From Trichosphaerium sp. ATCC 40318 (Eukaryota > Protista > Tubulinea): a stretch of 64,000 bases of DNA. A program made the position numbers and the translations under genes. The stretch spans positions 62,001-126,000 of the forward strand of contig JALMLS010000329.1 in the NCBI GenBank assembly GCA_038496445.1, in the 5' to 3' direction. How positions within the stretch are numbered: position 1 is the first letter of the stretch; each line of letters starts with the position of its first letter. Shown here piece by piece: positions 6,690 through 63,704 of the stretch. The notes beneath the pieces are model-generated. The model was given only the letters and a program-made list of their open reading frames with translations. It did no database searches and was not told the origin of the DNA.

Positions 6690-7110
6690 TAAAGTCGTCT
6701 GTAAATAGAATACTACCATTAATTTATCTACTTGTCGGCGGAAAACAAATAAGAGTATTTCATCATTGGCTGGTGTTTGTACCATAAATTTGAGTTGGCC
6801 ATCAGTAACAAATAAACGGGTTTAGGACTTAGTTGGTATTCATACCACTAGATTTGAGCCACACATCAGTATCAGATGAATGTATTCCAAGTTTGGCTAG
6901 TGTACACAATAGACCTCACAAGTTGTGATATCAGTGGAAAATGTATGAAGAGTCTTGCAACGTCCCATCAATAACCAATGCACCACGTGATTGTCTTGAT
7001 TGTACACAACTCTCTGGTGTAAAAGTAGTAAATCACAAGTGTTGTGAGAATGTAACAAAGACATAAGCTAGAGTTGGCTATCAATTAACTTTGACAATGT
7101 TGAAATAAAC
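6690..7110 (+). pseudogene. Decayed LRR gene remnant (GVHTI-type)
   Basis: Translates as NTTINLSTCRRKTNKSISSLAGVCTINLSWPSVTNKRV*DLVGIHT/LDLSHTSVSDECIPSLASVH/IDLTSCDIS, with stops and frameshifts. Confidence 0.75.
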
Positions 7111-7294
7111 CTCAGTTCGACTTTTGTTTCCAAGTGCTATCACGACAATAAATTAGCTTGTTACGAACACACGATAGTTTAGCACACTAGGGCTTGTAAA
7201 TTTTAGCACTTTTGGTTAAATATGCTTTGGAATTATCGCTTACGTGTTTGCTGGGCAAAATCTAAAACAACTCAAGTCAGAATAAGCGCACAAC

Positions 7295-8875
7295 ATGAGT
7301 TTTAATGGTGTTTCAGTAGAGCAAGTATTAGAATATTATCGTAGTAACCACATAGACTGTTTGAACAAAATAACAGCGAATAATAACGAAATCTTCATTA
7401 ATCAGCTTGAGACTATTCTAAACGCTTCAAATACAAGGCTGGTACAGCAACTGGACCATCTTCTCTTTAAAAACGTAGAAATCAACATAAACACATCAGA
7501 TCAACGTAAAAATGATGTCAGCTTGCAGTACGGCTAAATAGGCGCTTTCTTCGCTTTTTTAAGTTCATGCCATTTCCCTGACTTAACTATACTAGAACTA
7601 GTTGTAATGTGATTTCTAAGGAACCAAATATTCTTGACTTTCCACCTGAGATTATCTCAAGTATTATTTCATACATAGAAGATAGATTTACTGTTGCTCA
7701 AACATGTCGCTTGATGGCAGATATCATTCATGATGTGGTTGGATATGATTATGTTTATTTAAACAGTTCAAGATATATTAAAGATAAGACAGTATAAGGG
7801 TGTTATGAATAATAGCGAAATTGGGTTATGTGGCTTGAAACAAAACACTTTATATTCAATGTTATTTGGATGTAGGCATGTCATGGCCCCAATTTTAAAC
7901 GGAGATGAGTACAGAATCAGTGAACATGATCTAAAAGCACTGAAAGGTGTGCATACTATTGATGTTAGCGGTTGTTGTCAAGTGACAGATGAAGGGCTTA
8001 AGGTACTTTCTGGGGTATATTCTATCAATCTTGCTTGGTGTGACTCAATCACAGATGATGGTATTATAGCACTCAAAGGCGTTCATAAGATCTACCTTCA
8101 ATACACTTCAGTTACAGACAAAGGTCTCAAAGCGTTAGCAGGAGTACATACTATCAACCTCACTGCTTGTGATGCTATTACAGATGAAGGCATAAAAGCA
8201 CTGGAAGGCGTATACAACATTCAACTTGACTACACCCAAGTTTCAGATAAAGCTCTCATAGCCCTTAAAAATACTCATACAATAGGCCTTAAGGGTTGTG
8301 AGAACATCACAGATGAAGGTATAAAAGCTCTAAAAGATGTGCATACCATTGATATTGGTGATTGTGGTAATGTGACAGATGAGGGTATCAAAGAGCTAAA
8401 AGGTGTACATACAATTGATCTCAGAAACACTCTGGTGTCAGACGAAGGCCTCAAAGCACTCCAAAATGTTCATGATATTAACCTATTCAATTGTAGAAAC
8501 ATTACAGATGAGGGAATCAAGGCACTAAAAGGTGTACATACAATTGATCTCAGAAACACTCTGGTGTCAGATGAAGGTATAAAAGCTCTGAAAGATGTGC
8601 ATACTATTTGTCTTGCTGATTGCCATAATGTGACAGATAATGGTATACAAGCACTAAGATCTGTACATTCAATTGATGTTTCAGGTACCTCAATAACAGA
8701 TGAAGGAGTAAAAGCATTGAAAGGGGTACGTGACATTGACCTAAGTGGCTGTAAAAACATTACAGATGACGGCATCAAGGCACTTAAAAATGTTGGTGCT
8801 GTTGCTATTATTGGGTGTCATCATGTGACTTTTGAAGGCATCAAAGCCCTAAAAGGTGTTCATGTTTACAAGTGA
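7295..8875 (+). CDS. F-box + leucine-rich repeat protein; F-box and LRR parts separated by a +1 frameshift near 7790
   Basis: ORF 7295 can splice (GTACGG...ACTAG) onto the F-box ILDFPPEIISSII...AQTCRLM (7609-7797). ORF 7805-8875 has about 14 repeats of 21-22 aa (xTDEGIKALKGVHTIDL). Collinear with the intact paralog at 62499-63704. Confidence 0.75.
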
Positions 8876-8931
8876 ACTTTCAATAAAAAAACAGTTTAAT
8901 AATGTCAACTTCTGTCTTGTTGATATGAGCT

Positions 8932-11057
8932 TTATTTTACAATAGTATTTGTTGCTAAATGAGGGTCAGGCCTTATTGAGAACGGAAATACTTGCTCTGG
9001 TTTAAAATAAGCAACTAAAACAGCAATGATTACAGCTACAATCAAGATGATGCCAACAGCAACTCCAGCAATAATAGGTACAGTATTACTAGATCCACTG
9101 CTTTCTTCGCAAGAACCTATTGAGAATACAAGTACGAGACTATTTTTACCTACTTTCAGTTTATCGCAAAACGAATTGTCTGTAAGTATAAACTCAGGAG
9201 GAGTACATCCTTCCATCCATGTCACTAGTGTAATACTAACACCTTGAGAACGAGTAACATTATCCCCTATTGACACTGATATTGGGCTATTATTGTCTGA
9301 TGAAACACAGCCTGTAACAACAAGATTACCACCTTCACCAAAAGTTACACTTCCTTTGAGTACAACATCGCCTTTGGATAGTTAATAATTGTTGTTAAAA
9401 GACAAACCACTTACCTTCAATAATAACTGTGTTTATAATTGTTTCACCATCAGGTACCTCGGTGACTGTAGAACTCAGAGGAGCAAAAGGAGTTTGTGGA
9501 AGCCCATCAAGACCAGGTAATTTTGTACTACTAGACGATCTCAAAGTTACATCCTGAGTAGGTGAATTAATAAGGGGTAGCTAAGTTATAATGTACTCTG
9601 CTATCATAATCCATTGTCGCTAAAAACAAACTATCATTGTAGACGAAAATATCCCACGATTCTTCATTAATGGGAGTTAAGATTGTTTCATTCCAGGAAA
9701 TACCAGTATCATTGGATGAAAACAGAAGGATGTTACGCTTGCGTGGTGTAGATGAGGTGTTACTACAACTGTAGTTAATAAAGTCAAGATTCTTTAATGT
9801 GTCATACGTGGTGTGAGCAAGTAAGTAAATTAGTCCGTTTGGGTGCCACGCCAGTCTTGGATTGTAGGAGTATAGGCCACCTTGCATTGACTTTGTTAAT
9901 TGGAATGTAACGATTGACCCTTTGCTCGCCAAGTTGTATCGAAAAAGCCTATTTTTCAGACGTAATTAATCAGATTATCTTGTTTTTTTCCTACGTACGC
10001 AATTTCTGCTTGTTCAAAATATACAAAAGCAAACAATAGAATATCTTCACTACGCAGACCATTAACATTCCATCTACGTTTTGTTTCAATGTACCTCGCT
10101 CTAATAACGCTAAATAGTCTTGAGGAGCTCCCGTTGACAGCAGGTGTAGCAACATGTGTCCAATTTCTAGATGACTCATCTAAATAGTCAATTCTTGGTG
10201 CTGGATCTGCACTTTCAGCATAAAAAGAGTAGAACATTTCGTTGATTACTAACACCATATACCTCATCCTTAAAAAAGGTTACCACCAAAGACAAACAAA
10301 ACGTGGAGTACCTTGTAGTTTTATCTAAGTTTCGATGAATGCAACAATCACAAGATTCAACCTCGTTATGATAGCACTCTGTAAAATCTTCTGATGAAGT
10401 AGTATAGCGGACAACCATTGCCCCATTGGGAAGATAGGCAACGGGAGAAAGTACGCTTATAGCATGGTTTGAAGGCGGAACGTTGACTAGCTCCCAAGCA
10501 TGGCCATCAGTTGACCTAGCCAAAGTATTAAAAAAAGTTCAGGAAAGCAGTATTTTGTATACTAACGTTGCTACATATCCGCGAAGGTTTGGCTGGAATG
10601 GAGTATTTTCATAAAATGTTATTACCCATCTGAAAACACCCTTCGAAAATGGATAACCATTAACTGCCTCTAAATGTACTGTGTTGTTAATATCCCCGGA
10701 ATATATTACTTGCTGAGATACCCTAAGGGATAAATAAATAAGTTTCTCCGAAAACGAAAAGTGAGGTTCGCACGGACGTACAGAGAAGGACTCGAGAAAT
10801 ATAATGTCACGTTATTTCCATTACCGTTTTCTAACCATACTACACCGAAGGTACCATTTCCAGATGCAAATTTAACCTGGAACTTACTATCAGTGGTAAA
10901 TAAATCGTCCGTTGAGCTCGCATGTGTTGGGACAAGAAAAACACAAACTATCACGTGGTTAAAAATGCGAAGTTATTACGCTAGGGTAACGAAATAGCGT
11001 ACCACAAATTATAATTATCGTGGCACTAATATTGTATTTTCGCGCGTCCCTTTCCAT
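8932..11057 (-). CDS. Type I membrane protein with Asp-box (BNR/sialidase-like) ectodomain
   Basis: Spliced signal peptide MERDARKYNISATIIIICVCVFLVPTHAS; Asp-box-like ATSTDGHAW and FSSNDTGISW; C-terminal TM VPIIAGVAVGIILIVAVIIAVLVAYF with a short tail. Confidence 0.65.
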
Positions 11058-11650
11058 GCTTCTTAGAATGTAAACCTTGTGAATTACCCCGGTTGACTTT
11101 TTCGCAATATGGAAGAATTTTTGTGATTCCATACAATGCCTTACTAAGATTAAAAACTATTAAAGCCTTAACGGTGGACCATTGTATCATGACAAAACAC
11201 CGACACACCAACCACCTGGTTGCTGGTGTAGCGAACATCAATTGAAAAACTAATACAACTTTTGTATGCTTGTATCTACGAATAAACACATAGAAATGTT
11301 CCTAATCCAGGCAACCCTCTACCAAGGCAGCGCTAACGCAAAGACAAAGCATAGAATAGGTTATATTCATTGTAGCTAACAGAACATGCTATTGGCACTG
11401 TTTGAGTTGTACTGACTGCTTAGCATCTATTGGAAGGAACCTCAACGATAGCTACACGAATATGAAGGTCACAGTAAGGAGTAAGCAGTTGTAGTCACCA
11501 AAAGTGTCAAAGACGACTTGGCACTAGTTTGCGTTGATACGCCTGTAATTGGAAGTTCTACAATGGCGAAGAACGAAATGTTAAATAAAAAATAACTCTT
11601 CAAGTATTTATTCTTGCACTACAGCTTTTTGCCATAACAAGTTACGATGT

Positions 11651-12578
11651 TTATTCGTGAGGATCTTTCCACCCATTTTTTTTCTTTCCTTTGTAGTAGT
11701 AATTATGATAACCGGCACCACAAGAGTTATCAGCATTTATGAGAAATACGCCAACGAATTCTTTAGTTATTGGCGATATACCATATATAAGATAACAGTA
11801 AGTATCGTCATCACAAAACTTAAAACACGTGAGTTTCTTCAAACCCCACATTTCTTTTTCAACAACTTCCTCCAAAGCTGTCAGCACTTGAGGGTTTTCC
11901 ACATACTCTGAGAATGATGTCAAGCTTATTTCTTCGAAATATGACCATTCTAGCGCGTCTTCTCCGATACAGTTAAACTCTAGCAACAGCTCCAACAACT
12001 TGTTGTTCTTCGCTGTTTTCTTTTGCTACTGCTAGATAAAATGGTGAAAACTTTGGCACACTTGGTTCATAGTAGAAAGGAAACTCGAAGGAGTCAAGAT
12101 GTTGTGCGAGAGACATAGCTATCTGTTGGTTAACGCATCTATCCTTCCAGCATTTTACATCACCTTCCAACATCAACTTCATCGTTTCATCTTCGCCACT
12201 GTGTTCGTCAACATCCTCGTCACTATCATAAACGTCTTTGGGACAATCCGCAATCGCAATCAAACCCATTGATTTGGATGTATGTATTGTGAGCGACTCG
12301 CAGAAATACTCCCATACTTCATTGTAATAACTGTAATTTAAAAGTTCCTCGATACTCTTAGGTTGTTTTACATTGACGGCTTGAGACTTGAACTTTTCGC
12401 GCCAATAAAACACTTTCGATTTCGTTAAAAGTTCAAAACGTTTAGATAGAACTAAATGCGTAAAGAGGGACGCCTTGTCTCTGTTATGGTCTAAAATGGC
12501 TATAATGATCTCTGGAGGAAGTGGATTGTTTGCACCGGTTGATAGACTTGTGTACTTCCTCTTAGTTGCTTTGTTCAT
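11651..12578 (-). CDS. Intronless F-box-like protein split by a +1 frameshift near 12000; C-terminal part possibly NuiA-like
   Basis: N-terminal LPPEIIIAILD...LVLSKRF...YWR. Two overlapping ORFs (11973-12578, 11651-11998) with no usable intron between them. Confidence 0.55.
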
Positions 12579-12791
12579 TGGTGTGTTGATAATTTGTAAG
12601 GCAGCATTAAGTGCTGATTAACACGCGCTTCGTATCTTTTCAAGAATACTTAGAATTCGCTTACCTCACGTGCACGTGCCAACGGAAACGTCCAAGGATA
12701 TTTCAAATCATGTGAGGAGTAGAATTATAGTATTACCTTTTTATCTATTTATGTACAACTGTATACAAAAAAAAAATGGGAGAAATGGCTA

Positions 12792-14612
12792 TCATACAGA
12801 TTCTGTGCTTTCTTTGGTTTGTATCGTTTTTTTTTTAACAGCAATAGAAGTATTTGATGTACCACTGCGTTTTAATTTTCGAGGTTGGAAAGAGTAAACC
12901 TAAACACGTCAGGCCTTAACTGGTGGGCAAATAAAAAGCGCTGCAGTTATGTTATCTTACTTGTAGAATAGACAAGAGACTTTGAGCTGAGTAGCTTGCA
13001 CCAAATGCATAGATTGCTTTGACCAAGTCGAACGAAGGAGGTATCGTAAGAACAATAAGACTTATAATAAAAGCACCAAGAATGATTGAATTTGCTGTCA
13101 ATCGCCAAATAATCTACAAATAAATAAATCACATGACAAATCACGTGTACTTTAAAATTTGGCTTTATTTTTTGGATAAGATGCAAGCGTACGTTTCTTA
13201 AAATACCGTTTCCAACTCCATTCTTAAAACCTCCTGCACGTTTGAACACCTTTTACGTTTATTAAAAAAAACTGTAAACGAAAAGTCAACGTACTCTAAT
13301 TAAAATTACAACACCATACACCAATGTACCAAAGTTGACTAGGATACCAAGTACTTGCGGAAGTAACAGTACAGCCTTGGTTGGGTCTGAAATTATCGAA
13401 CGGAGTGTGGCAACCAATAATTCAAGTCCAATGAGAAAAGCACTCATTGCAATGAATGGAATAAGGAATTTTTTTGATTTTAGAAACAAGTGTATTTCGA
13501 GTCCTTTTGAAACAAGTGCTTCGTGCCTACCATGTATGTCAGCGAAAAGTGATACCGTAGTAATTTGCTGGTATGTAACGCACCAAAACATGGTTATCAT
13601 GATGTTGGTAATGGTTGAAAGAGGAAATGACAGGTAAAGTATAAAGTCATCGAACTCTGGACTGTAAAGCAAGTTCGCGCCCAAGAAATTGATGATGTAA
13701 ATAATCTTCACTGTAATGAAGATCGATGAGTTTAACAAACGTACTTGAAAAACAACAAGGGAGTACCTATATTCGCTATTATTTCAATAAATATCGCGAC
13801 CACAGCCAATGATAACGTGAATAATTGGTCTAGTTTGTAGAATTGATACAGCCTACGAAAAATGAGCTTGCGGTACTTTTTAAGGTTACTAGCGTACCTG
13901 AAGAAGCACAAACACAATGCCATCGTACAAAGCGCTGATACAATACATTGAACTAAAATAAAACCGACACTCGTAAAAAGTGCGTGACATTCATTGTGTG
14001 CTTCGAAATTTTAGTTCCCTACAATATTGACGCTTCGTACTTGGTGTAATTGTTACTGTCACGTTATTACTCAAGACACCTTTTCCATCAGCATCAGATA
14101 TTTCTACAATGGGCACACTGACTCTGTACAAGCTTCTCGCTATTAAAAAGTGAGAAATACGTAAAATCACGTGGGTTGTGTAGGAAAACAGGTATAAACA
14201 AAATAAAACTGAAAAAACATACCATAATTGAAATACATTTCACAGCCAATGTTACCAAAGAAAGGCGACCTTGAGTATATTATAGCGATTGCTCCTGCGT
14301 CCATAGCTCGGAGAATATTTTCTGTAGATACGTCCATCAACGGTAAATACACTACAGAGCCTAGGAAGTAGTTGTAGGCAAGAGTTTGTCAGAAAAAGGA
14401 GTTTGTTACAAAGTACCTCTAACTGGCCTATCAATCAAAGACAGCGACGCATTATTGATAGGTGAGAAGTCCAAAGAGTTTCCTCCGAATATTAAGGGTG
14501 TTGAATCAATAGTTATCACTTCTCCAAAAGATGTTGCATTCATGACTGCTATATTACCATACGCAATGGCAACAAGTGAAATGAAAAGGATGACAATTCG
14601 CGGAGCAAACAT
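12792..14612 (-). CDS. PA-domain 7TM receptor-like protein, copy 3 (inverted)
   Basis: ATG at 14612 (MFAPRIVILF), same exons as copies 1 and 2, ends ESTESV-TGA at 12792. Confidence 0.8.
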
Positions 14613-15066
14613 TATCCCGTACTCTTTATAAAAAGATACCCCGACTAAAACTGTTTTTTTACAGCACTTAAGTTCTTCCTTGACGTGGATGCGTACTGTA
14701 AAGAACAAATCAATCAAGAAAAATGCGCTATGTAGTATTTTGTAGCCGGTGGACTTTTTGGGATTGTGTTTTCGTTCATTGTAACGTAGAGTGTGGTAAC
14801 ACCATCAAATTTTAGGAGCTTGTGATTGTGGTAGTAAACTAGTTTACAGGTGTAGTGCTCGGCTAGGAATGGCCACGTTTCAGGTTCAACAATGGTAGTG
14901 TATTTGTTGCCACTATATCATTGTATAAGATTTTGCGAAGACGAAAAACCCCTAACTAGGAGGAACTCTAAGAAACTACCAATTTTTTAAGGCAAAGTTC
15001 TTTCATTGACTTATTCGTATTGTACATGCGGAATTTTGTTTCCTTTGCAGCAGCAGAGAAACAAGA

Positions 15067-18000: not shown

Positions 18001-18495
18001 CATAGAGACTAAAAGACTCTCTGAGGCAAAAAATAGAGTCTTGAGTTATAAATCCGCAGTGATATAGTGGTGTGCCGAACACAAGCGAACAAATTGGTCC
18101 AGGTATGTGTGTACAAACGAATAAACTTGCACACCACTGTTGGACCAAAGGATATTCGCCATTCGCTTGCCACGCTCGTAATTGAGTGCAAACACGTCTA
18201 TTAGCTTCTCTATCCATTACGCTAATGTAAGATATTATAAATAAATCACCAGAACCGTTTTTTATTATCTGAGGGTGCGATGAGTCCGCTGTAACTAGTT
18301 TAGACAAAAAAAGAGTTAGCGTTAGGTACACAATTATAAATAGGATAAAAAGAGCTATTTATGCCCTTTGTTTAGTACTATGTAGAACGTACTCAAAAAG
18401 CCTGGGTCTTGAAAGAATTCCGTTGTTGAGCGAGGGTGTTGTGCATAAACCGTTGTGATTGCTATTAATGCATAAAACAGCACGTATACACCCAT
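15067..18495 (-). CDS. Receptor-type tyrosine kinase / TKL kinase
   Basis: Signal peptide [18 protein letters not shown], large ectodomain, TM near 16540-16600, kinase motifs [40 protein letters not shown]. Confidence 0.85.
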
Positions 18496-19462: not shown

Positions 19463-19825
19463 ACAAACAGCTTGCGAACATATTCTAAACAAGACAACAA
19501 TGGCAAAATACTAGATCCTATTGTCGTCTGGCTCTACAAACATAACAAACACAAGTTGGAGGACGCACCCCTTTGGCTTAACCGCTGGTCACGAGGCCTG
19601 ACTTTGTTTTATAAACTCAAAGAGGATTTACCTTGTGATGTTAGCTTGAAGGCAAAAAAAATTGTACAAAAACACCTATGTCAGAGTATACAATTGCTAT
19701 GGCAACAGCACCAAAAATAAAACTGACATTAATCGCAGGATAGCACACTTTGCTTTTAAAAGCTAACTAAGTTTCTATTCTTTTTTGTTTGTTTGTTATT
19801 CTATTGTACATGAAATTTTTGATTT

Positions 19826-24824: not shown

Positions 24825-25014
24825 GGTATCAATATTTAAAAATCAAACTCCTGAGCTTGTTTTAACTACTTTGAGCAGCCAATTAAACGATTTGTTAATA
24901 TTACCTTCTAAATTAATACATGTAGGCGACCGGAGGTCAACCCGTGCTTTTTAAAGTCAATAAAAACTTCTGTTGACTTTTGGTATTAACTCAATATAAG
25001 CAGCTCTGATAAGC

Positions 25015-27289: not shown

Positions 27290-27540
27290 AAAGTGCATAC
27301 ACCTTTTACTCTCAACAACTATTACTTAGCGATTCTATACAAACATTCTGTGAGATTAATGGAAGACATCTCAGCATTAGTTGGTTCTCTTAATATTGTT
27401 TTGCTAAGCAAAGGTGTAACAGATGAAGGTAACCCTTATACACTGATGAAAGTGTCGTAACATTGGCTGAGGATTCTTCAAGTTGTTGTCTATATAAGGT
27501 TGTAAAAAGCTGTTTACACCCATCGGTGTAATGATGGCCA
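27290..27540 (+). pseudogene. Decayed LRR remnant
   Basis: EDISALVGSLNIVLLSKGVTDEG and TDESVVTLA in different frames. Confidence 0.55.
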
Positions 27541-34699: not shown

Positions 34700-35529
34700 T
34701 TATGATATAATACAACGGCTGCGCTTTGGAACAGTATTGTTATGTGTACTCCATCCAATGCGCCTACACTCATGTATGATGGCTTTGAATGATTCTAAAA
34801 CATTCTGTCTTGTTTTTGCTGATGTTTCAAAGAAAGGACACTCAAAGCAGGCAGCCATGTGCTCCCCTTCTCTCTTTTTAACTTGCCTGTCTTCTTCCAA
34901 GTCAGATTTATTACCAATAAGTACTATTGGTATATCTTCTCTATATGGTTGTGCCCTACATTGGGGTAAGTGAGCGTTTGTATTGTAGGTTGGGAGGTAA
35001 CATGTGATTTACAACAACCTAAACTCCTGATAATGAGTGTGCACTGTAGTAAAATATCACAGGCTGCACAAATTTTGTTTTAAGGCAAAAGCAAATTCCA
35101 CTTGGCCTGATGCTGAAACAATGACATTTTTTTTCAAATTAATGAGTGTTTCTACGCTATTAAGGTACCTAAACATATTATCACGCCTTTCATATGTACT
35201 TTCAAAGGATTCTTTGCTTGTTATTGAATAAACCAAATAAACACCGTCACATTGTTTAAAATATACATCTCTCAGGTAACTAGGTGTGGACACATCGTTT
35301 GATGTATCTAATACCTCTATAATGCATTTTATACCATCAACTTCAAATTGCCTGCGGTAAACATCTTCAAGTGTAGGGTCGAACCTTTTAACATTAGTTA
35401 TTTTGTTCAGAAATGTCATTTGGATACATACTCGTCTACAAAGCGGTTGTTTATCAATTGTATAGTTAGGGATGATTTACCTACACCTGCATCACCTAAT
35501 ATAGCCACTTTATACTCGATGGGATACAT
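34700..35529 (-). CDS. Divergent Ras-family GTPase
   Basis: [24 protein letters not shown] (in place of DTAGQ), GNKSD, ETSAK, CaaX CIIS. Confidence 0.9.
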
Positions 35530-35599: not shown

Positions 35600-35960
35600 T
35601 CAAGCTTTGGGTGTTCGTAACCTCCAAGACACTGATGTTAGAGATGAAGGTATAAACGAGCATTCTGGTGTTCATACTGTCAATGTTTAAACTGTATGAT
35701 GTTAGAACTGTAAGATAAAATAGAATCTTATTTGTGTTACAGTCGACGGCAGTCAAGTTATCAATAGTAATTATTATTGACTTTGACCAGACTTTGCAAT
35801 TACACAATAATGTTCCAGTTAAGCCGTTTTGTTTAGCAAGAAAAGTGCAGCGTTGACTTTGTTTATAATAATTGTTAATTTTTAACAACTTGACTGCCGT
35901 CGACAATATTGTAAAACTTGCCAGCGTTGTAATTACTAAATTTATCTGCACAGATATTAA
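35600..35960 (+). pseudogene. Decayed LRR remnant interrupted by a MITE
   Basis: LQDTDVRDEGINEHSGVHTVNV* before the insertion; VKLASVVITKFICTDI after it. Confidence 0.65.
35740..35906. mobile_element. Putative 167-bp MITE, Tc1/mariner-pogo type
   Basis: Perfect 18-bp inverted repeat GTCGACGGCAGTCAAGTT (35742-35759) / AACTTGACTGCCGTCGAC (35887-35904); left end starts CAGT; TA on both sides (35738-35739 and 35907-35908). Confidence 0.65.
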
Positions 35961-37942: not shown

Positions 37943-38461
37943 ATGGATCTTATACTACGAAAATTACCTGTTGAGCTTCATCTAAGCATCACATGTGTTG
38001 ATAAAGAGATATTCATCAAATGGCCTCTATTGTGTAAATACACTGCCACAACATCAAGGTTTAACGAAAAATTAGAGAAACACGGCAAATTCAAGTGCTG
38101 GGACGGTAGTCAGTTAATGTATTCATCTAGCTTTGAAAACGGCGCGCGACATGGCGTATACAAGCAGTGGTATGCCAATGGCGTCCTTTATATTGATTCT
38201 AAGTTTAATAACGGTAAACGAGACGGAAAGTACACTCAATGGCATTCTAATGGTGTATTATGTGCGTCGTGCTGTTATGATAAAGGTAAAATGGTTGGAG
38301 AGAACAAGGAATGGTTTGAAAACGGAAAATTACAAAAACAATGCTTTTTCATTGATGATCTTATGGATGGTAACTATTATCAATGGGATAGAAGTGGTAA
38401 GCTTGTACAGTATTTAGTTTATAAAGATGGGTGCCTTAGAGGAGCACATGTGTGGAAATAG
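37943..38461 (+). CDS. Intronless MORN-variant repeat protein with F-box-like N-terminus (giant-virus-like)
   Basis: LPVELHLSI N-terminus, then repeats NGARHGVYKQWYANG, NGKRDGKYTQWHSNG, GENKEWFENG. Confidence 0.8.
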   Translation: MDLILRKLPVELHLSITCVDKEIFIKWPLLCKYTATTSRFNEKLEKHGKFKCWDGSQLMYSSSFENGARHGVYKQWYANGVLYIDSKFNNGKRDGKYTQWHSNGVLCASCCYDKGKMVGENKEWFENGKLQKQCFFIDDLMDGNYYQWDRSGKLVQYLVYKDGCLRGAHVWK

Positions 38462-40709: not shown

Positions 40710-41067
40710 AGTTGTATTGTAAAAAAAACCTAATAAATCTTGTTATTGTCGGCTAAACCATTTGGCTTTTTTAACCAACACTTTTACCTGGTGGGCTGCA
40801 TTTAGAGTGCAAACCCCATCTCCTTAGTACCTTGTTTCTGAATAACAAGACTTTTGTGTTAATGTATACAACCAACGAGAAAGAGTTTACAGTGTTTTCT
40901 TGTAGTGTATCTCCAATGTCAGGCATAGAAAATTGTTATGATAATAGTTTGTTCCTAATGTATATACGTATTAACGTTCGTTCACATAACGGGTGACTAA
41001 GTCAACTTTATTTATAACTAAAGCAACCAAAAAACAATTTAAAATAGCAACCACTTTACAATCCACA

Positions 41068-41764: not shown

Positions 41765-42090
41765 ACAAAATAACATCTATACTAAGTGCAATTCTCCGGC
41801 AGAGTGTGCCAATAACGAGATTCACAAAAACTCACAAAAATTAGTTGTGCAATAATCAGCCAATAATAAGGTCGTATTGATTATTATAGATAACTGTTTC
41901 TCTGTAACACAATTTCTTGATTTATCTATTGCATTAACAACCAGGCCCAAGGCCATGCGCGGAATGTAGTGTATACACTAGCGCACCTGTACAGATACTA
42001 CAACAAGAGAATCTGTGATACCTTTGAACAAATTAAACAAAAGTCAATTTATTGTGTACAAATTTATATTATACAATGTTGTTTACAGAT

Positions 42091-46241: not shown

Positions 46242-48096
46242 ATGTTATCTCGATTTACGCTTTTACTCTCACTTATTGCTATCGCATACGGGAATATATT
46301 GGTTCTAAATGAAACGTATGGAGAATTCAATCGTATTAACTCGACGCCCTTAATTTTTGGTGGCAACTCTTTGGACTTCCCACCTATCAATAACTCATCA
46401 GTGTCATTGATTGATTCGCCAATAAAAGGTATTTTCTCTCGAACAAAAAATACGCCATACGAAGTATTCGAACAACAAGTAATCACGTGTTCTAGGGTCT
46501 GTCGTGTATCTGCCTCTAGAAGATGTATCTACTGAAAATGTACTTCGCGCTGTGGACGCAGGCGCAATTGCTATAATATGGTCAAGGTCGCCCTTTTTTA
46601 ATAATGTTGGATGCGGAATGTATTTTCAGTATGGTACGATTTTAGTGTTTGTGTGATAGACCTTCGGACTTTTTGACGTGTCATCACGAGCGAACCAATT
46701 TTTCTCAAGTATACAATAGCAAGAAGCCTGCATAGGGTTACTATACCAATTGTAGAGGTGGCAGAAGCCGACGGAAAGGCCGTTCTAGACTCCACAGTGA
46801 AAGTCTCAATAACATCAAGTACGAGAGGCTAATAATGATGTTATCTTACAAGTCAAAGCGCACAATGAATGCCACGCACTTTTTACGAGTTTTGGATTTA
46901 TTTTTGTCCAATGTATTGTATCGATACTTTGTATTGTGGTACTATGTTTGTGCTTCTTTAGGTACGCTTGTAACATCAATTCGAGGTTAATAGATTTGTC
47001 TGTAGGTTGTACCAGTTCTACAAGTTGGATCAATTGTTCACATTGTCATTAGCCGTTGTCGCTATATTTATAGAAATAGTATCAAACACACGTGCGTGTC
47101 TCATACAAGTTTATGAAATTTAATCAGTGTATCAGTGAAGTTTATTTACATCATCAATTTCTTGGGTGTGAACTTGCTCTACAGTCCAGACTTCGATGAC
47201 TACATGTACTACTTATCGTTCCCTTTTTCCACAGTTACCAATATCATGATAACAATGTATTGGTAAGACCTACTTTCTAGAAATATTCCGATAATAACGT
47301 ATTAACCTCTAGGCATGAAGCTCTTATTTCGAAAGGACTTCAAATACATGCTTTTCTAAAATCAAAAAAGTTCCTCATTACCTTTATTGTACTGAGCGTT
47401 TTTCTTATTGGATTGGAACTTTTGGTTGCCACCCTTCGCTTGACGATTGAGTCACCAGCAAGGGTTATAGAACTAATGCCTCAAGTACTTGGTATTGTAG
47501 TTAACTTTGCTACATTGGTGTACGGAATAATCATTCTAGTAAAAGTACGTAATAACAAACGTGGAAATCTCAAGCTTTTCTCATCTATTTATAGATTCTC
47601 CAACGTGCAGGAGGGTTTACAAATACAACAGGAAACAGTCTTTTGAGAAAGGTAAGCTCAAAAACGGTGCTAAAATGAACACGTGCTCTAAACGATTTAG
47701 TAACTTATTTTTAGATCATTTGGAGAATGTTGACGAACTCAATTCTTCTTGCTGTTTTTATCATCAGCCTCATTGTTCTTGTTTCGCCTCCTTCGTTTAA
47801 TTTGGTCAAAGGAATCTATGCTTTTGGCGCAAGTTACTCAGCTCAAAGTCTGTTGTCAATTCTACAGGCAAGATGAAAGAAATAGCTTTCAACTTGAGTT
47901 TTTTTGTTTCAAAAAATGTTGTGTTTTATGAACGTAGCTTGCTTAAGTTATTATTTAGGTGTACTCTTTCCAACCCAGGACAGTGAAAAAACCGAATATA
48001 AAATCTACCAGCTCTGGTAGCAAAATAAAAAAGAAGCCCAACACAATTAAAATGCAATTTGAAGATGAAGGAGAAGAAGAAATTGAAACTGTTTAA
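46242..48096 (+). CDS. PA-domain 7TM receptor-like protein, copy 4 (more diverged)
   Basis: Same exon layout; the last intron uses a GC donor at 47868; ends EIETV-TAA. Confidence 0.8.
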
Positions 48097-53391: not shown

Positions 53392-53650
53392 GGATGCACT
53401 ATAGTTCTTTAGTGCACTCTTTTTTTCAAAATTTCAAAAAAAAAAAAGAACAAACCTTTTTAGTTCATTGTAACAATGCTCTGATGATTAACAGAGCTTG
53501 CGAGATAATGTAAAATTCTACCTGTTTGATCGCCATTTGGTTGTTTTTGTTCGTCCAAAACGAGTTGGGAAGATTAGTGCTGACTTTTTTTTCTTGTTCA
53601 CTTAAGTGTAGACTTTTTAAGTCAAACCAATTTAACACACAACCAGCACA

Positions 53651-55340
<1,690 letters not shown>

Positions 55341-55831
55341 AAATCTTGGTGTGGGTATAAATTATTATAAAAACCCACTGCCCCTTTCAATTCTATGTAC
55401 TGTTTTTGTTTTAAAGTAATTTTTTTGTGTTGATGTTGCTGTGAGAGACCTTTTTGTGAAAAATGAAAAAAAAAAAAAGGATCTTCTCTCACGAACTTCA
55501 ATGCAAAAGTTATTTTAGACTTAACTGTTCAAGAGTTGTTTTAAAAAAACTGTAAACAGGCCAAGGTCGTTTGTATCTTATAAATATTCTAAGGATATTG
55601 TTTGAACGTCGTTTTTGTTCTTTTTTGGTATTTTTTTGTCATTTTTTTACCAATTTCGGAAGTGAAAGTGTTGGTTTACTCAAGACAACTTTGAAGAGTT
55701 TATTCACCGCACTCATTGGAATCCGCGCCAAGCTAGTTAAGATCTACTGCTTCAGGTAAATTGACAGAACCGACAATCTTGAAAAATAAAGTATAAGTTC
55801 TTTATCATTTTGTAAACACATTGTCCAACAC

Positions 55832-56355
55832 ATGACACAACATTACTTACTAACGACTGGTTTTTGGTTTTATACCTCGTTGTGCTACACATTGCGCAAC
55901 AGACAGGAGTACGGTATTACTCTACATAAACATTAAGGGCACTTAGCGTTCTTTGTAGAGTTGCAGATGCGATTGTAAAAATGATGTGACGTTCATCAAG
56001 TGTACGCTTTGATCAAGTATAGCTGTTGTCCAGCAGGACAGCATTCTTTTTTGGTGTCTGTTTGTACCTTTTTGCTGAACATGTTACAATATAGGTACAG
56101 CGCCAAAGGAGTGTACAATAGAAAACTGCGAGCGTTTTAACGACTGTGATTGCAATGGTTTTTGGTGCTTGTATATCGGATGATATCCAGGTGCTTGCCG
56201 GAGAACCGTCCGGAGGAAAAGGAGGAAAGGGAAGTAGCACGGCGGCTATAGTTGGCGGGTACATAGATGGACTTATCGTTTTTGGGAGCTATTATTGCGG
56301 GAGTTGTGATTATAGTGTTTACATGAGAAAGAAACACAGCTACAGTGAAATATAA
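55832..56355 (+). pseudogene. Possible disrupted small Cys-rich type I membrane protein gene
   Basis: Fragments CRCDCKND, ECTIENCERFNDC, SSTAAIVGG, GAIIAGVVII and RKKHSYSEI lie in different frames. Confidence 0.35.
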
Positions 56356-56965
56356 CGTGAGTGGATTGTCCATCAACAGAAATTTACTTTTTTTTGACTT
56401 GTAAGTGAACTTGCTTGTGTCTTTACGCAGTTGAATGGCTGTAATAATTAATTCGAGCGTTTTGACAGAAGTTGACGTACTTTCTTTTCACGTACGCCCA
56501 ACTTTCTTCTGCATACGATCTACACGTAGCAGAGTCCAGCAGATGACGAAAAAAGGATTTTTTAGTGAGATGTTTCTTTATTTGTAGGGTTGACTTGTCA
56601 TTTGTTATACTGCGTTAAACCGCGCTATGTGGCACTAACTAGATTTTCAAAGGCATACAAACTAAAATCAAACAAAGAAACCTCTAAATAAGGGACAGTC
56701 TTTTCTTCATCGTTTCTTTATGGAAAAATAGACGTGATCCTTTGTCTTCGTCACCCAAATAAAGTTATAAAGCGCGAAACACAACCTCTACCGCGAGGTC
56801 AATGAAAACACGTGAAACTTTGTTTGTTTGTGACTACTGTGAGTCTTTGTAAGCTTTTTAGTGTGTATAATACTACAGAGAGTGATTAGTACACATTCCG
56901 TTGTTATTCTTGTGGTTTTTTGCACCGTTTTGTTTTACAGTCAAAATTTACGGTTAATTAACAAC

Positions 56966-59950
56966 ATGAGCAACACGTCAGCCCGCTATAAGGCGCGTGG
57001 TAACAAAGCATTCAAAGCCAGCAAATTCAACACTGCCCTTACGTTGTATTCGAAAGCTATTGATGCTTCGCCTAGAAATCACGTATTATATAGGTATGGC
57101 ACCTTTATGGTCCGCTTTTAACGCTAACTTGTTCGTTTTTATAAAAAACCTCACAAAAAAGCCTTCTAACTCCTTCATAATAGTAACCGATCCATCTGCT
57201 ACTTAAAACTAAACAAGAACGGCGCTGCTAAACGCGACGCACTCCAATCCATTGAACTAGACCCTAAATGGGCCAAGGTAAGCGCTTGTCACCTCTCGGT
57301 GTGGACTTAGACCTTATTGTGTTAGGGATACTTCCGCGCTGGCGTTGCCTGTGTGGCTGAGAAAGACTACGCGGAGGCTTTCTACTTCTTGAAAAAAGGC
57401 CAGAGCGTCTCCCCTACCGAAACCTCCTTCAAAGAGCTACTTGAAGTGTCAGAAGCAGCTGTACGATACATTTTATATTAATAAACGCTCACACTTGCTT
57501 ATAGTTAGGACCAGACGGTATAAGGAAAGTTATAGATAGATTGGAGGTATGTATTTTGAAACAAAACGTCAAATCTCTAACTTCTCGCTTTTAGAAAGAA
57601 GGCATTGAAGTAATAGGCGATTACGGGAAGAAAGAGGAGACCCCTACCGCGGATGCTGAAAAACCAACTGAAACTCCAGAACCTGCAAAAGTTGAAGAGC
57701 CAAAGGCTGCACCAGTAGCAGAACCAGTAAAAGAAGCTCCAAAAGACGACGTACCAAAAGCGGAGCAAAAAGTTACCGAACCTGCAGTTGCAGCAACACC
57801 AGAACCAGCAAAGGAGGTAGCGCCAGAACCAGCAAAGGAACCTACAGCAGAGCCAGTGAAACAGGCCGAACCTGAACCAGCGAAGGAACCAGAGCCTGAA
57901 CCAGCTAAGGAGCCAGAAGCAGAGCCAGCAAAAGAACCTGAACCTGAACCAGCCAAGGAGCCAGAACCTGAGCCAGTCAAAGAAGCCGAACCAGAACCTG
58001 TTAAAGAGCCAGAACCTGAGCCTGTCAAAGAACCTGAACCAGAACCTGCTAAAGAGCCAGAACCTGAACCAGTGAAGGAACCTGAACCAGAGCCAGCGAA
58101 GGAGCCAGAACCAGAACCAGCAAAAGAACCTGAACCTGAGCCAGCAAAGGAGCCAGAACCAGAACCAGTGAAGGAAGCTGAACCAGAGCCAGCGAAGGAG
58201 CCAGAACCTGAGCCAGCAAAAGAACCTGAACCAGAGCCAGCGAAGGAGCCAGAACCTGAGCCTGTCAAAGAACCAGAGCCAGAACCTGCCAAAGAACCCG
58301 AACCAGAGCCAGCGAAGGAGCCAGAGCCAGAACCTGTCAAAGAACCTGAACCAGAACCTGTTAAAGAACCAGAGCCAGAACCAGCGAAGGAACCAGAACC
58401 AGAACCTGCAAAAGAACCAGAACCTGAACCAGTGAAGGAACCTGAACCAGAACCTGTCAAGGAGCCAGAGCCAGAGCCTGTCAAAGAAGCCGAACCAGAA
58501 CCAGCGAAGAAACCTGAACCTGAGCCAGTGAAAGAACCTGAACCTGTTAAAGAACCAGAGCCAGAACCAGCGAAGGAGCCAGAGCCAGAACCAGCGAAGG
58601 AGCCAGAACCAGAACCAGCAAAGGAGCCAGAAGCTGAGCCTGCCAAAGCACCAGAACCAGAAAAGATAGAAAAACCACAAGAACCTGAACAACTTCTTGA
58701 TGACAACGGTGAAACTATTGAACTTGAAGAAGCCGACAAACAACAGACTATAAGGGTACGTGCTTTTTTTTTTTTTTCATTTACAAATCATTTCTTTTTT
58801 CTGACATTAATGGCGTAGGAATACCCAGCACCAGCACGTACGAAAGGTGGTAGATCAGTAGAACTGCATAAGTCGATTGGAGAAGCCTATATTGGTACGT
58901 GACGGACGTGACGAACGTGTTGGCAAGGTTAAAAATTATTTGTTTTGACATAAAAATCTTTAATTTTTCAGGCCAAGCTCAGTTGTAAATCCGTTTATTC
59001 TTTTTGCACGTGTTTTTTGTAAAAATTTCAACAGACCCTCACACTTTCTAGACATCAGAGATAATACAAGCAACACAGATTGGGCATTTGTAGAGTATTC
59101 TGGTACGTATTAGACGGCGTACAAGTTAACAGTGAAGTAATTTATCTAACTTGCAAAAAAAAATAGATAAGAAAGTTTTATACGTTTCAAAGACTGGTAC
59201 TAAAGCTAGTGGATACAAGGAGCTCTTAAACAACTTCTCTGCTGATAACAGGTATACATAGTTTGTAACTTTTCTTTTTTTTTTTCTTTCGAAAATAAGG
59301 TTCTTTCCTGACAAGTAATTTCTCTTTTAGAGCTTTCGCTTATGCGCGCGTTTGGTTACATGATGTATTACCAAAGTTTGTTTTCATCACATGGTGTGGT
59401 GATAACGTATCATCTTTTAAACGTGCCTTGATGTCTGGCGCAAAAGTGAGTGCAATTTCTTATTTTTTTTTTTTTGTTTTTACAAATTCTAACTGTCGTC
59501 TTCTTCTAGTCTCACATGATCGAAATTTGCCATCAAACGTCGATCTCTATTCAAGTACGTATATTTTTCTTTTCACTAGTAGAGTATCAGCAATTCTGTT
59601 GCTCCCCTTTGAAAGCGATAAATTGTGACAATTTTTTGATTTGTTTTTTTTGAGAATTATTTTGTGCCATTGTGGCGTACAAATGACTTTTTGTTTCATT
59701 TTATTGGGTTGTGTTTTATTGATAATATTTGTATTTTATTAAAACGTGACTCGTGCAATTCTTCAGAGAGTTGAACTGGTTGTTAATTTTTTCGTTTTAT
59801 TTCCTTTCTTTTGTTCTCCAACTTGTTGTGTTTGCTTGTTTCTAACATTACTTCTACCAGGCTACAACCCTTGACGAAATCTCAGAAGAGAGGGTTATGA
59901 AAGATATCCAAGGCGCTAGCGCTGGATCAGGATATGCAGGCGTGAACTAG
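56966..59950 (+). CDS. TPR + Glu/Pro-rich repeat + ADF-H (coactosin/drebrin-like) protein
   Basis: [12 protein letters not shown]...LYSKAI...NRSICY...WAKGYFRAG; KEPEPEPA repeats; C-terminal DWAFVEY...FAYARV...[16 protein letters not shown]. Confidence 0.8.
57850..58660 (+). repeat. Coding 24-bp minisatellite, about 33 units of KEPEPEP[A/V]
   Basis: AARGARCCNGARCCNGARCCNGYN units with synonymous variation. Confidence 0.95.
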
Positions 59951-60519
59951 TAAGCTAACTTAGTACATATATATTATTATGCTTATCTTATATGTATCCC
60001 CTTATTATTGTATGTATTGTGTTTGTTTTTACTTAGTTTCCTTCTTTTCTTTGGTGCTAAGGTTATCAAGACAGTATTCTTCTTTTACCTTTTATTGTGG
60101 TGTTTTATACGTCACTTGAAAGGCGTTCGAAAGAGAAACTTGTCTTGTAATATCTTTGGATACGAAAAAGTTTTTTCTTTTTCTTTGAATTCCAGGTGTT
60201 CTGTAGATGTTTGTTCTTATTACACCTGTTTCTTGGAAGCTGTATATATCTATAGGCTATGTATTACGTTTGTTAACCGTTTAATCGGTGGCTATATCCG
60301 ATAGTCAATCGATTTTTGTGTTAGAATATTCTGTTCACGCTTTTTTTTGTGCTCCTGTCAAATATTGATTTGTTTTCTAGTTGTTAGTAATGTATTGATT
60401 TGATAGGCTAGCATGCAAGTGTTTAATATTTATTAATAAACGAACGCACACACGTGTGTACTTTTTGAGCTCAAAACAAGTTCTTTCTATCTTCTTCACT
60501 GTAATTTTTTTCATATGTT

Positions 60520-60810
60520 GCAGATGAAGGAATCAAAGGTGTACATACTATCAACCTTTCAAAATGTCCAAGCAGTACAAATGACGGCGTCAAAGCTCTC
60601 CAAGGTGTTCATGAGATTAACCTTAGTCGAAATCTCTAACTGATGATGGTGTCAAATCACTTTCAGGTTCATATCATTGACCTTACAGATGAAGGTATAA
60701 AAGCTTTAAATGTGTCCGTGACATAAACGTTGGTATGACTAAAGTAACAGATGATAGCGTTAAAGCACTAGAAGGTCTACACTCATTGGCACTTGGTTAC
60801 AAATGTTTGC
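60520..60810 (+). pseudogene. Decayed LRR gene remnant
   Basis: DEGIKGVHTINLSKC..NDGVKALQGVHEINLS, TDEGIKAL, TKVTDDSVKALEGLH, with frameshifts and deletions. Confidence 0.85.
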
Positions 60811-61019
60811 AAGGTTGAATTGAAGTCAAACGGAGTTGAAATTAAAGACTAAGTCATGCCACTTCCAAAGAAAGAGTTAAAGTGTTAGGGTTAAAGAACT
60901 CTTTCAAGCATTTTGATAAAAGAAAACTTATCTCAAAGTCACTTTTTAACTAACCACGTGATGACTGGGTAGTATCTTACTTACCTTGTGCAATAAAGTA
61001 GTTGGAGTATTTATTCGTT

Positions 61020-61484
61020 TTATTTCAGAATTATTCTTTCAAAGGCCACGAGATCATTGTCTTTAAGTTTTTTTGGGATATTAAAATTGTTGTTATTAAC
61101 AGAAATAATAGAGTTTTTTACATCATCAGCTAATGTTGGATAGCGTTCAATTAGTATGTCGATGAATCGTTCAATTGTTGTCTAATCATGTAGTCAAACA
61201 CACATGTGTTTAAATGCAAACAAGTTCAAGGTCTTACTTTGTGTGGAACTTCAAGGCGTAATTCTTCTACAACCTCAGCGCGGTGATGCCGGAATAAATA
61301 GCGTACTGTTATCTTCTAAAACTCACCGTTAATCATTAATATTTAAAACCATAGGGACCTACCCCGTGAGGTTTATGCGCTTTTTTTGACCCTTGCAGCT
61401 TTGCTCCGGCCTTTCCAGATGTAAAATGCATCATAAGCTATCAACGGTTAGTATATTACACTTGTAGTCACAGCAACACACCAT
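61020..61484 (-). CDS. MoaD/ThiS-like ubiquitin-fold protein without C-terminal GG
   Basis: Spliced KITVRYLF...LEVPHKTTIERFIDILIERYPTL...IISVNN...LKDNDLVAFERIILK-TAA. Confidence 0.6.
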
Positions 61485-61559
61485 GTTTGTATTCACCGCG
61501 TTGTATACAATCAAACACAAAACGGCCTTAATGTAGAGTCAAAGTCAGTGTCTTGACAT

Positions 61560-62123
61560 GCGAAGCCCGTGTCACATTCAATCAGGCGAAATAACCTTAC
61601 ACGGAACAATAGGAAGCGGTTTTGGCGCAGTTTCAAGTACGTTCATAAGGGGCAGCACAGTTTTTGTGTAATTTGCACAATTTGGCGAATTGCCTAAAAT
61701 TAGAGAATTTGTGAAAATACCTTGTGAAATTACAAGGTAGAAAATAAATTGGCAGCACTGGCAATACCTTTTCTCACCACTGAATTAACGAAATAATTTC
61801 TCACTACTTCACAGTACTTTATAGTATATTGTATACTATGAGGCACAATCAAAAGTACAACAATGATTGCAGTGATGAGAAACAGCATTGTAAAGATTCC
61901 ATAAAATGCAGTAAAAGTAGCAAATTGCCAGAAATTGTAGCAATTCGCAAAATGCAATTGCTACAATTTTGACAAATTGTAAGCTTTGTGCAAAAACTGT
62001 GCTGGCCCTAAGATGATAAAAATAAGATCTATCGTTACCACGCAACACAAGACGCGTATTAATACGCAAAAGGGGTATATGGCGTGGCAGAAAAGTAGCT
62101 ATAAAGAAAATAATGTCAAACAT
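61560..62123 (-). pseudogene. Disrupted membrane-protein gene fragment
   Basis: Hydrophobic exons (FYGIFTMLFLITAIIVVLLIV) with intron-like gaps; in-frame TAG near 61960. Confidence 0.35.
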
Positions 62124-62498
62124 TCAGGCAGCTATCAGCGGTATATCTAGTCGGTAAAGAGATAATGATATGGTCTATACTTGACATGCTAGCAACAATA
62201 GTAAACTCATCGCTCTTGTTTTCTAGCTACAAATACTTGACATCAAAAGAATGAAACAATCCTTTACAGACACGCTGTGTGGTGAAGGAATATCAAGAGT
62301 GATGAAGTATTAGTATTTTATTGTAATCAGAGCCTTGGACTCAATTGATTTCCTTGGATGAGAGTTGTCGAGGTTTACAAGAACTCATTTCATATTGAAG
62401 CACAAACTAGTAGCTACTCTATGGTTAACAGAAAATGTATTACTACACCTGTACTGTAATTAAGATGTATTTTATTACTATTTCAAGAATCAAACAAT

Positions 62499-63704
62499 TT
62501 AACGTCTTATTATATTCACTGCACCTGTCAATGACTTGATTTGTTCATCATTTAGTTTGCAATTTTTTGTCAAGTACATAGTATGTACACCTGAAAGTCC
62601 TTTCAACAATTCTTCTGTTAAATTCCAATGCTGCAAACCAATTGTGTGTACGCCCGCCAATGCTTTGATATCCGATATCTTGTAACATCTTGCCAACTGA
62701 ATAGTATGCACACCTGCCAGTGCCTTGATGCCCTCATTTGTTATCTTTGTATCAGCTAGACCAATCAAATGTACACCTGATAATGCCTTTACACCTTCAT
62801 CTGTTACTTTTGTACCTTGTAGATTAATGAAGTGTACACCTGACAATGCCTTTATACCGTCATCTGTTATATTTGTTCCTGCTAAATAAATGCTATGTAT
62901 GCCTGCCAATGCCTTTATGCTCTCATCTGTTATTAATTTGCAATAGTTCAAGCCAATGGTGTGTACACCAGCTAACATTTTAACACTCTCATCTGTTACA
63001 TTAGTAGATCCTAAGTTAATCCAATGTGCACCTGCCAATGCCTTTACACCTTCATCTGTTATTGATTTGCAATAGTTCAAGCCAATTGTGTGTACACCAG
63101 CTAACATTTTAACACTCTCATCTGTTACATTAGTAGATCCTAAGTTAATCCAGTGTGCACCTGCCAGTGCCTTTACACCTTCATCTGTTATATCTGTATA
63201 TGTTAGATGAATTGTATGTACACCCGACAATGCCTTTACACCTTCATCTGTTACTTTTGTGTATGCCAAGTTAATTGTATGTACGCCAGCCAACGTTGAA
63301 ACACCCTTGTCTGTAATATGTGTACAATGAGACAAGTTTATATTGTGTACACCAGCCAACGCCTTAAGACTCTCATCTGTTACGAATTTACACTTGAACA
63401 GGTCGATAGTGTGTACACCCGCAAGTAAAGGCAAGCAACTGTTGTCTATTGTACAGCCACGCAAAGAAATTACTGTATTCTTCAATAAAGGGCTTCCTGC
63501 CAGGGTCTCTATTTTTTTTTCGCTATCAATAGTGATTTTGCCATATCCCACATGGTTGTGGACAACATCTCGCAAAAGGCGGCAAGTTTGTGCTGAATGC
63601 AGTGTGTGTGTCCCTTGCTTAAGTATATGTACTATTAGTTCAATTGGCAGCAAAGCAAGGTCAGATATGTGCGCATTTGTTTGGTCTGTGGCTTTTTCCT
63701 CCAT
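62499..63704 (-). CDS. Intact intronless F-box + LRR protein (giant-virus-like GVHTI repeats)
   Basis: LALLPIELIVHIL...AQTCRLLRD F-box followed by about 15 repeats of xTDEGVKALAGVHTINL. Confidence 0.9.
   Translation of the reverse strand: MEEKATDQTNAHISDLALLPIELIVHILKQGTHTLHSAQTCRLLRDVVHNHVGYGKITIDSEKKIETLAGSPLLKNTVISLRGCTIDNSCLPLLAGVHTIDLFKCKFVTDESLKALAGVHNINLSHCTHITDKGVSTLAGVHTINLAYTKVTDEGVKALSGVHTIHLTYTDITDEGVKALAGAHWINLGSTNVTDESVKMLAGVHTIGLNYCKSITDEGVKALAGAHWINLGSTNVTDESVKMLAGVHTIGLNYCKLITDESIKALAGIHSIYLAGTNITDDGIKALSGVHFINLQGTKVTDEGVKALSGVHLIGLADTKITNEGIKALAGVHTIQLARCYKISDIKALAGVHTIGLQHWNLTEELLKGLSGVHTMYLTKNCKLNDEQIKSLTGAVNIIRR

Follow-up and report, generated by a model that had tools for sequence, protein, structure and literature searches.

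We analysed a stretch of 64,000 nucleotides (nt) from the genome of the protist Trichosphaerium sp. ATCC 40318 (contig JALMLS010000329.1, positions 62,001 to 126,000 of the forward strand), hereafter called the window, in which two genes encode proteins made of an F-box followed by an array of leucine-rich repeats (LRRs). A first-pass annotation of the same DNA had described one of these genes as intact and the other as frameshifted, and had listed clear and faint fragments of the same repeat between the neighbouring genes. It had proposed that the family was repeatedly inserted and lost, through viral endogenisation, retroposition or mobility, or that it formed a cassette pool, in either case a candidate for an undescribed system. 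The description was confirmed in part, and the interpretation found partial support. The two genes, their constituents and the decayed copies are listed below, with the evidence in brackets; ORF stands for open reading frame, and P0001, P0002, P0004 and P0010 are eukaryote transcript proteins described further on.

7295-8875, plus strand: gene 1, a type I F-box/LRR gene with N-terminal domain, F-box, linker and LRR array and with one frame change (ORFs, Pfam, alignment to P0001)
7295-7480, plus strand: N-terminal domain of gene 1, about 60 residues, with no Pfam family (common to transcripts P0001 and P0002)
7636-7734, plus strand: F-box of gene 1 (Pfam)
7946-8854, plus strand: LRR array of gene 1, with some 13-14 units, each 21 or 22 residues long (unit profile, Pfam LRR_6)
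62499-63704, minus strand: gene 2, a type II F-box/LRR gene, intact as a single ORF of 401 residues (ORF, Pfam, AlphaFold2, PDB match)
63552-63656, minus strand: F-box-like region of gene 2, ahead of a conserved linker common to P0004 and P0010 (Pfam, alignment)
62592-63419, minus strand: LRR array of gene 2, 13-14 units spaced 21 or 22 residues (unit profile)
62902-63191, minus strand: recent internal duplication of a two-unit (129-nt) block of gene 2, 95% identical (Tandem Repeats Finder)
6714-6968, plus strand: remnant A, about 4 LRR units, truncated, with no F-box (tblastn, unit profiles, blastn, nhmmer)
60512-60815, plus strand: remnant B, about 5 LRR units, truncated, with no F-box (tblastn, unit profiles, blastn, nhmmer)
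35619-35681, plus strand: possible vestige of one unit, borderline, between a Ras-like gene and an actin-related gene (nhmmer, blastn)
27407-27430, plus strand: possible vestige of part of a unit, weaker still, downstream of an actin-family gene (nhmmer)

The claim of an intact F-box/LRR gene at 62499-63704 proved sound: the ORF of gene 2 is uninterrupted, its array scores 110.8 bits against the Pfam family LRR_6 and its N-terminus gives a weak match to the F-box-like family. The AlphaFold2 model of the protein, with a predicted local distance difference test score (pLDDT) of 84.8, comprises N-terminal helices and then a regular strand-helix solenoid. Its best match in the PDB is FBXL2 bound to SKP1 (6o60_C, E = 6e-15), and FBXL17, COI1 and TIR1 are also listed; FBXL17 was in addition recovered by sequence among solved structures. 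The exact product of gene 2 has no record in the assembly collection that was searched. Within the array, the longest exact self-match of the duplicated block reaches 65 nt, and the 95% identity between the two copies of this two-unit block indicates that arrays change length by exchange between units.

Gene 1 is distributed over three plus-strand ORFs, which hold the N-terminal domain (ORF 7295-7537), the F-box and the LRR array, respectively; each ORF was searched separately. The F-box passes the Pfam cut-offs of both F-box-like (24.8 bits, E = 1.8e-5, for a cut-off of 24.3) and F-box (21.6 bits, for a cut-off of 20.5). The array scores 106 bits with LRR_6 and displays tandem periods of 129 and 258 nt according to Tandem Repeats Finder. 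This gene had previously been placed at 7609-8875 and called frameshifted. The frame change was found again, but the start has to be moved to 7295, since P0001 and P0002 carry the domain of ORF 7295-7537 in front of the same F-box and LRRs. Residues 1-386 of P0001 align to the window from 7295 onward, in two frames. Both genes combine an F-box and LRRs and belong, as had been recognised, to the kind of protein that serves as an adaptor of the Skp1-cullin-F-box (SCF) ubiquitin ligase, on the grounds of the Pfam F-box and LRR_6 matches and of FBXL2-SKP1 as best structural match.

The F-box and the LRR array of gene 1 lie in different frames, and all three parts of the gene stand in one frame in P0001 and P0002. 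A single frame change is present, with no room for an intron at that place; it means either that gene 1 became a pseudogene very recently or that the assembly is in error there. That the gene would be unbroken in the organism, the frame change coming from an error of assembly or sequencing, is a tenable possibility that we nevertheless do not favour: homology to P0001 and P0002 continues without loss on both sides of the change, and no further internal stop occurs over about 1.3 kb of coding sequence, but a very young pseudogene and an error look the same in the content of the window alone. The N-terminal ORF is separated from the F-box ORF by a gap that corresponds to a linker variable among relatives. 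It contains a canonical, frame-preserving GT..AG interval of about 70 nt, a size like that of readable introns nearby (e.g. 47 nt), and gene 1 may have a short intron at this place. The description of the genes as intronless in an intron-dense genome is accurate for gene 2 and, in gene 1, for the part that encodes F-box and LRRs, but perhaps not for gene 1 as a whole.

In both proteins the LRR array is C-terminal to the F-box (LRR_6 scores of 110.8 and 106 bits, 13-14 units per gene), and the two arrays are 46-48% identical. The units measure 21 or 22 residues in near alternation. Columns 1-3, 5, 7, 14, 15, 19 and 21 form a nearly fixed scaffold, the most frequent residue having a share of 1.00 in columns 5 and 21 and of 0.88-0.92 in columns 2, 3, 7, 14, 15 and 19. 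Columns 4, 6, 8, 9, 11, 12 and 22 are highly variable, with entropies of 2.1-3.1 bits; this is the usual LRR pattern with a variable binding face. Canonical FBXL repeats are about 26 residues long. The window units do not show this cysteine-containing repeat of about 26 residues, their spacing being 21 or 22 residues, and an extra residue is present at column 11 in only about half of them. Together, the spacing and the optional residue at column 11 define a variant LRR subtype within an FBXL-like build. With the FBXL proteins (Skp2, FBXL2, FBXL17 and the plant proteins TIR1 and COI1) the window proteins share an N-terminal F-box followed by an LRR solenoid, FBXL2-SKP1 being the top structural match; they differ from them in the alternation of 21 and 22 residues and, for type I, in the extra N-terminal domain without Pfam family. 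In length the units are nearer to the internalin type, and Internalin A and designed 22-residue LRRs are also matched.

To detect decayed copies, we used tblastn, a protein profile of the unit applied to overlapping six-frame pieces and compared with 10 shuffles, sensitive blastn, and a DNA profile of the unit searched with nhmmer and compared with 20, then 300 Markov shuffles. Two remnants are solid. Remnant A, annotated beforehand as 6690-7110, was recovered at 6714-6968 (tblastn E = 5e-8) with four units scoring 13.3, 8.7, 5.9 and 2.8 bits; its reading is disrupted by 2 frame changes and by at least 1 stop in frame, and gene 1 follows about 330 nt downstream on this strand. Remnant B, annotated as 60520-60810, was recovered at 60512-60815 with five units at 10-30 bits; its reading is disrupted by 1 frame change and by 1 stop in frame, and it lies past the 3' end of gene 2, at a distance of about 1.7 kb and in opposite orientation. 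The remnants share 62-70% DNA identity with the genes over 108-166 nt, the longest exact match being 21 nt. Exons of a live gene were considered for them and rejected, because frames change between adjacent units with no room for introns.

The two other fragments reported as clear shrank considerably. Of the 360 nt at 35600-35960, about 60 nt stand just above the controls: nhmmer gives 11.1 bits (E = 0.018) at 35619-35656 on the plus strand, a score equalled by the best scores of 2% of the 300 shuffles, and blastn gives E = 9e-4, but the protein unit profile of 35619-35681 yields only 7.9 bits, the level of the shuffles. Of the 250 nt at 27290-27540, about 25 nt are left, namely 27407-27430 on the plus strand, with an nhmmer score of 8.9 bits (E = 0.085) that is matched by 6.7% of the best and 0.7% of the second-best scores of the shuffles. 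Taken together, these two are probably real single-unit vestiges. The faint candidates at 11140-11560, 19500-19750, 40800-40950, 41830-42030 and 62200-62460 did not exceed 2.5 bits in any test, within the range of the shuffles, and were discarded; against the shuffled controls, two fragments are thus solid, two lie just above and five fail. A family profile covering F-box and linker revealed no more F-box remnants in the window, the best other match having 11.2 bits against 15.1 bits reached in shuffles. All four remnants and vestiges (6714-6968, 27407-27430, 35619-35681 and 60512-60815) are on the plus strand, which may be due to chance with n = 4.

The best matches in word searches are five proteins (P0001-P0004 and P0010) of a single transcriptome, JGI sample 3300016894, also in MMETSP, and the next ones come from the named amoebozoans Clydonella and Stygamoeba; to judge by these named matches, the window most likely belongs to an amoebozoan nuclear genome. 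LRR_FBXL15 is on record for the transcript relatives. Their G+C content is 0.35-0.38, like that of the window, and one transcript ends in poly-A. The five proteins split into the same two architectures as genes 1 and 2: the F-box of gene 1 is 61-64% identical to those of P0001 and P0002, and the N-terminus of gene 2 is 47% identical to that of P0004. Since the two genes pair with different transcript subfamilies, both subfamilies predate the split of the two eukaryotes. On the unit profile, P0001, P0002, P0004, P0007 and P0008 reach 28-45 bits per unit and the distant P0003, P0005 and P0010 12-20 bits. The non-repeat N-terminal parts of the genes have significant matches only in transcripts of this one eukaryote transcriptome, and none among the viral, bacterial and metagenome ORFs compared. 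When the N-terminal 175 residues of P0001 were used as word-search query, P0001 itself was the sole return.

The most probable reading of these data is a family of FBXL-like SCF adaptors that is specific to the lineage and undergoes birth-and-death evolution, local duplication being the source of new copies. Diverged paralogues, subfamilies shared with another eukaryote and two solid pseudogene fragments are all present, and the existence of decayed copies means that the family gains and loses copies, as the first-pass annotation had supposed. The solid remnants lie 0.3-1.7 kb from a gene, and four copies of a membrane-protein gene occupy the same region. The family proteins are built of an F-box and a conserved linker, after which come short LRRs alternating between 21 and 22 residues; by homology and predicted FBXL-like fold, they would be SCF substrate receptors. 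The F-box would dock on Skp1 in the ligase, and substrates would be presented on the variable concave face of the LRR solenoid. Two old subfamilies are present, type I with an extra N-terminal domain (gene 1) and type II starting directly at the F-box (gene 2). Genes would duplicate locally, giving rise to the remnants, and arrays would grow by unequal exchange between units; surplus copies would decay in place, leaving first a truncated dead array beside each live gene and later single-unit vestiges. What is seen resembles the usual duplication of genes and decay of their copies; a new mechanism, be it mobile, viral or based on cassettes, and hence the proposed undescribed system, is unsupported.

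Birth-and-death evolution with pseudogenes is a documented mode for F-box families (PMC3030570, PMC4209131). The F-box superfamilies of plants (PMC3030570) and mammals (PMC3984280), which follow birth and death or genomic drift, likewise combine lineage-specific expansion, pseudogenes and local duplicates beside live genes, and a variable recognition domain; they differ in scope, the window family being known from one 64-kb stretch. NEX1a of Neochlamydia, which are symbionts of amoebae (PMC4209131), has an F-box, a conserved linker of about 50 residues and an LRR array and also undergoes birth and death with pseudogenes, but it is bacterial. A scan of bacterial genomes with a single protein returned LRR-only matches of 24-32% identity in Planctomycetota and Melainabacteria-like metagenome-assembled genomes (MAGs), and none in Chlamydiae. 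The window documents a protist subfamily of SCF substrate receptors that has an unusual LRR unit of 21/22 residues and, in one branch, an undescribed N-terminal domain, and it provides an example of the ordinary turnover of such families.

Several points weigh against this interpretation. Birth and death alone leaves the absence of introns in the F-box-LRR parts unexplained, and the eukaryote relatives are known as transcripts, which give no view of their introns. Intact and decayed copies were counted within the single 64-kb window. The F-box-like match of gene 2 reaches 15.7 bits, under the Pfam cut-off by itself; gene 2 aligns with P0010, whose Pfam F-box scores 40.9 bits. Over the whole array, the giant-virus contig L012 scores 188-191 bits with both window genes, and P0001 177-193 bits. 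Finally, two AT-rich metagenome contigs that may or may not be viral, L016 and L018, contain units with a score of 40 bits on the window profile and an identity of 54-56% to gene 2.

The last two points bear on giant viruses, which do carry related F-box and LRR paralogues, as had been stated. The IMG/VR giant-virus contig L004 encodes an F-box (Pfam F-box, 25.9 bits) and LRRs, and L012-L014 carry LRR paralogues, several in tandem, whose units open on the same 'VHT' motif. Such families (PMC5753266; L004, L012-L015) resemble the window family in general build and, for some, in the 'VHT' unit start and a mid-unit motif. They differ from it by an N-terminal motif of their own or a generic F-box, by a unit spacing of 20/24 or about 24 residues, by a much lower score per unit on the window profile (11-19 bits for the IMG/VR giant-virus units) and by a G+C content of 0.18-0.28. 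We observed that the LRR paralogues at L012 1809-3416, L013 1773-3176 and 3232-4119, and L015 3788-5005 share an N-terminal motif of their own before the 'VHT'-type units, and at least 2 of them are head to tail on one giant-virus MAG contig. The arrays of L016 (215-877) and L018 (70-501), whose units are the closest to those of the window, are on short, tightly packed, intron-free contigs with a G+C content of 0.28-0.30, and this packing looks viral. The L016 array sits behind a short F-box-like N-terminus.

As L016 and L018 share the unit type of the window, a viral link is possible for the repeat array. One could further suppose that amoebae and AT-rich genomes of the giant-virus kind exchange a short LRR array of 'GVHT' type as a module, L016 and L018 being viral, that host adaptors and their viral counterparts compete for substrates and for the SCF machinery they have in common, and that the dead host copies record repeated turnover under this conflict; we consider this scenario unlikely. 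Also unlikely is an old exchange in which the family, or at least its LRR array, passed from a giant virus to the protist or in the reverse direction, its copies having since become host-like in composition. The viral paralogues, the L012 score, the units of L016 and L018 and the lack of introns in the F-box-LRR coding parts would all agree with such an exchange, but the N-terminal non-repeat parts match eukaryote transcripts only, and both subfamilies already exist in a second eukaryote. We gave more weight to this N-terminal evidence because identity between near-uniform repeat units overstates kinship, a reservation that applies equally to L016 and L018. The low scores of the IMG/VR units also argue against exchange, as does the nine-residue motif of the unit junction, which after back-translation had one match in IMG/VR, in an unrelated phage-like contig. 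Viral scans with the N-terminal domain of gene 1, with the ORF next to the L016 array and with the L016 LRR protein returned nothing.

Composition points the same way. The G+C content of the genes (0.37-0.39, and 0.28-0.32 at third positions) equals that of the kinase, RasGEF, Ras and MORN exons of the window and is distinct from the 0.21-0.28 of the viral loci. None of the 40 window ORFs scanned carries a viral or transposon domain; the genes thus have neither the foreign composition nor the adjoining viral hallmarks of an endogenous viral element. The proposed recurrent viral endogenisation is not supported by these results, and in the comparison with viral and protist LRR proteins the N-terminal region groups with the eukaryote transcripts. 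The unit type common to giant-virus-like contigs gives a minor but testable lead on the mimicry of ubiquitin-ligase adaptors between hosts and viruses, a theme already known for amoeba symbionts and viruses.

Retroposition, by which the intron-free genes and the fragments would derive from a spliced parent gene through reverse transcription and insertion of the processed copies, is very unlikely. Gene 2 is indeed a single exon amid intron-rich neighbours and the fragments are truncated, as processed copies could be. However, apart from ordinary AATAAA-like signals the copies show nothing like a poly-A tract, and target-site duplications of 10 nt or more are absent, the best direct repeat in their flanks being a 9-nt AT-rich word at chance level, and no repeat family or homology block was found flanking the genes. 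With these flanks, mobility in general, as put forward in the first-pass annotation, finds no support in the window. Moreover, no reverse-transcriptase domain was detected in the 40 ORFs, gene 1 may retain one intron, and the remnants consist of LRR units alone, without F-box or recognisable 3' end, which fits the decay of local copies equally well.

Silent donor cassettes are known from lamprey variable lymphocyte receptors (VLRs), Borrelia vlsE and Neisseria pilS, where many well-preserved donors share junction homology. That the fragments would be donors of this sort, diversifying expressed LRR adaptors by gene conversion in a variable-recognition ubiquitin-ligase system, can be set aside as extremely improbable: the variable positions of the unit fall on the presumed binding face, the fragments are close to the genes and arrays recombine internally (the gene 2 duplication), but just two fragments are solid, lying singly beside one gene each and bearing stops and frame changes, no homology blocks flank them, and with 62-70% identity and no more than 21 exact bases in common with the genes they are the reverse of preserved donors. 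As in the lamprey VLRs the LRR unit is the variable module, but the window has neither mosaic tracts nor homology at junctions, and an array of preserved donors is lacking.

Apart from the decayed copies, the window has an ordinary eukaryote-like content. Its G+C content is about 0.37 throughout (uniform range of 0.33-0.43), and genes 1 and 2 provide its longest ORFs, if a low-complexity repeat is set aside. In the ORF list of the window, the neighbouring genes appear as chains of ORFs of 90-200 residues. The Pfam-type domains in the 40 ORFs are all ordinary cellular ones: kinase, RasGEF, Ras, Raf-like Ras-binding domain, actin, MORN and CLN5-like. Scans of the window for transfer RNAs and Rfam families gave no match.

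A gene of about 1.9 kb, with several exons and without Pfam family, that encodes a membrane protein is present in four copies, at 2035-3872 (plus strand), 4650-6529 (plus), 12947-14612 (minus) and 46317-47881 (plus). Two copies are in tandem and one is inverted (88-98% identical); the fourth is more diverged (67-82%). A transposon was considered for this four-copy repeat and rejected, its sequence reading as that of a membrane protein encoded by several exons. Gene 1 and remnant A sit between the second and the inverted copies, which indicates a region of active segmental duplication. An ORF of 201 residues at 11973-12578 (minus strand) resembles an F-box weakly at its N-terminus (Pfam E = 0.058), lacks LRRs and may be a third F-box gene, of a different type.

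A divergent Ras-like GTPase is encoded at 35057-35529 (minus strand), with one 47-nt GT..AG intron readable by eye; its exon returned zero relatives when used as word-search query. MORN_2 repeat exons at 37943-38461 and 1423-1719 (both plus strand) look like parts of ordinary host genes and have no tie to the LRR family. Finally, a 24-nt repeat recurs about 36 times at 57798-58662; it is open in several frames and would encode a low-complexity protein rich in proline and glutamate.

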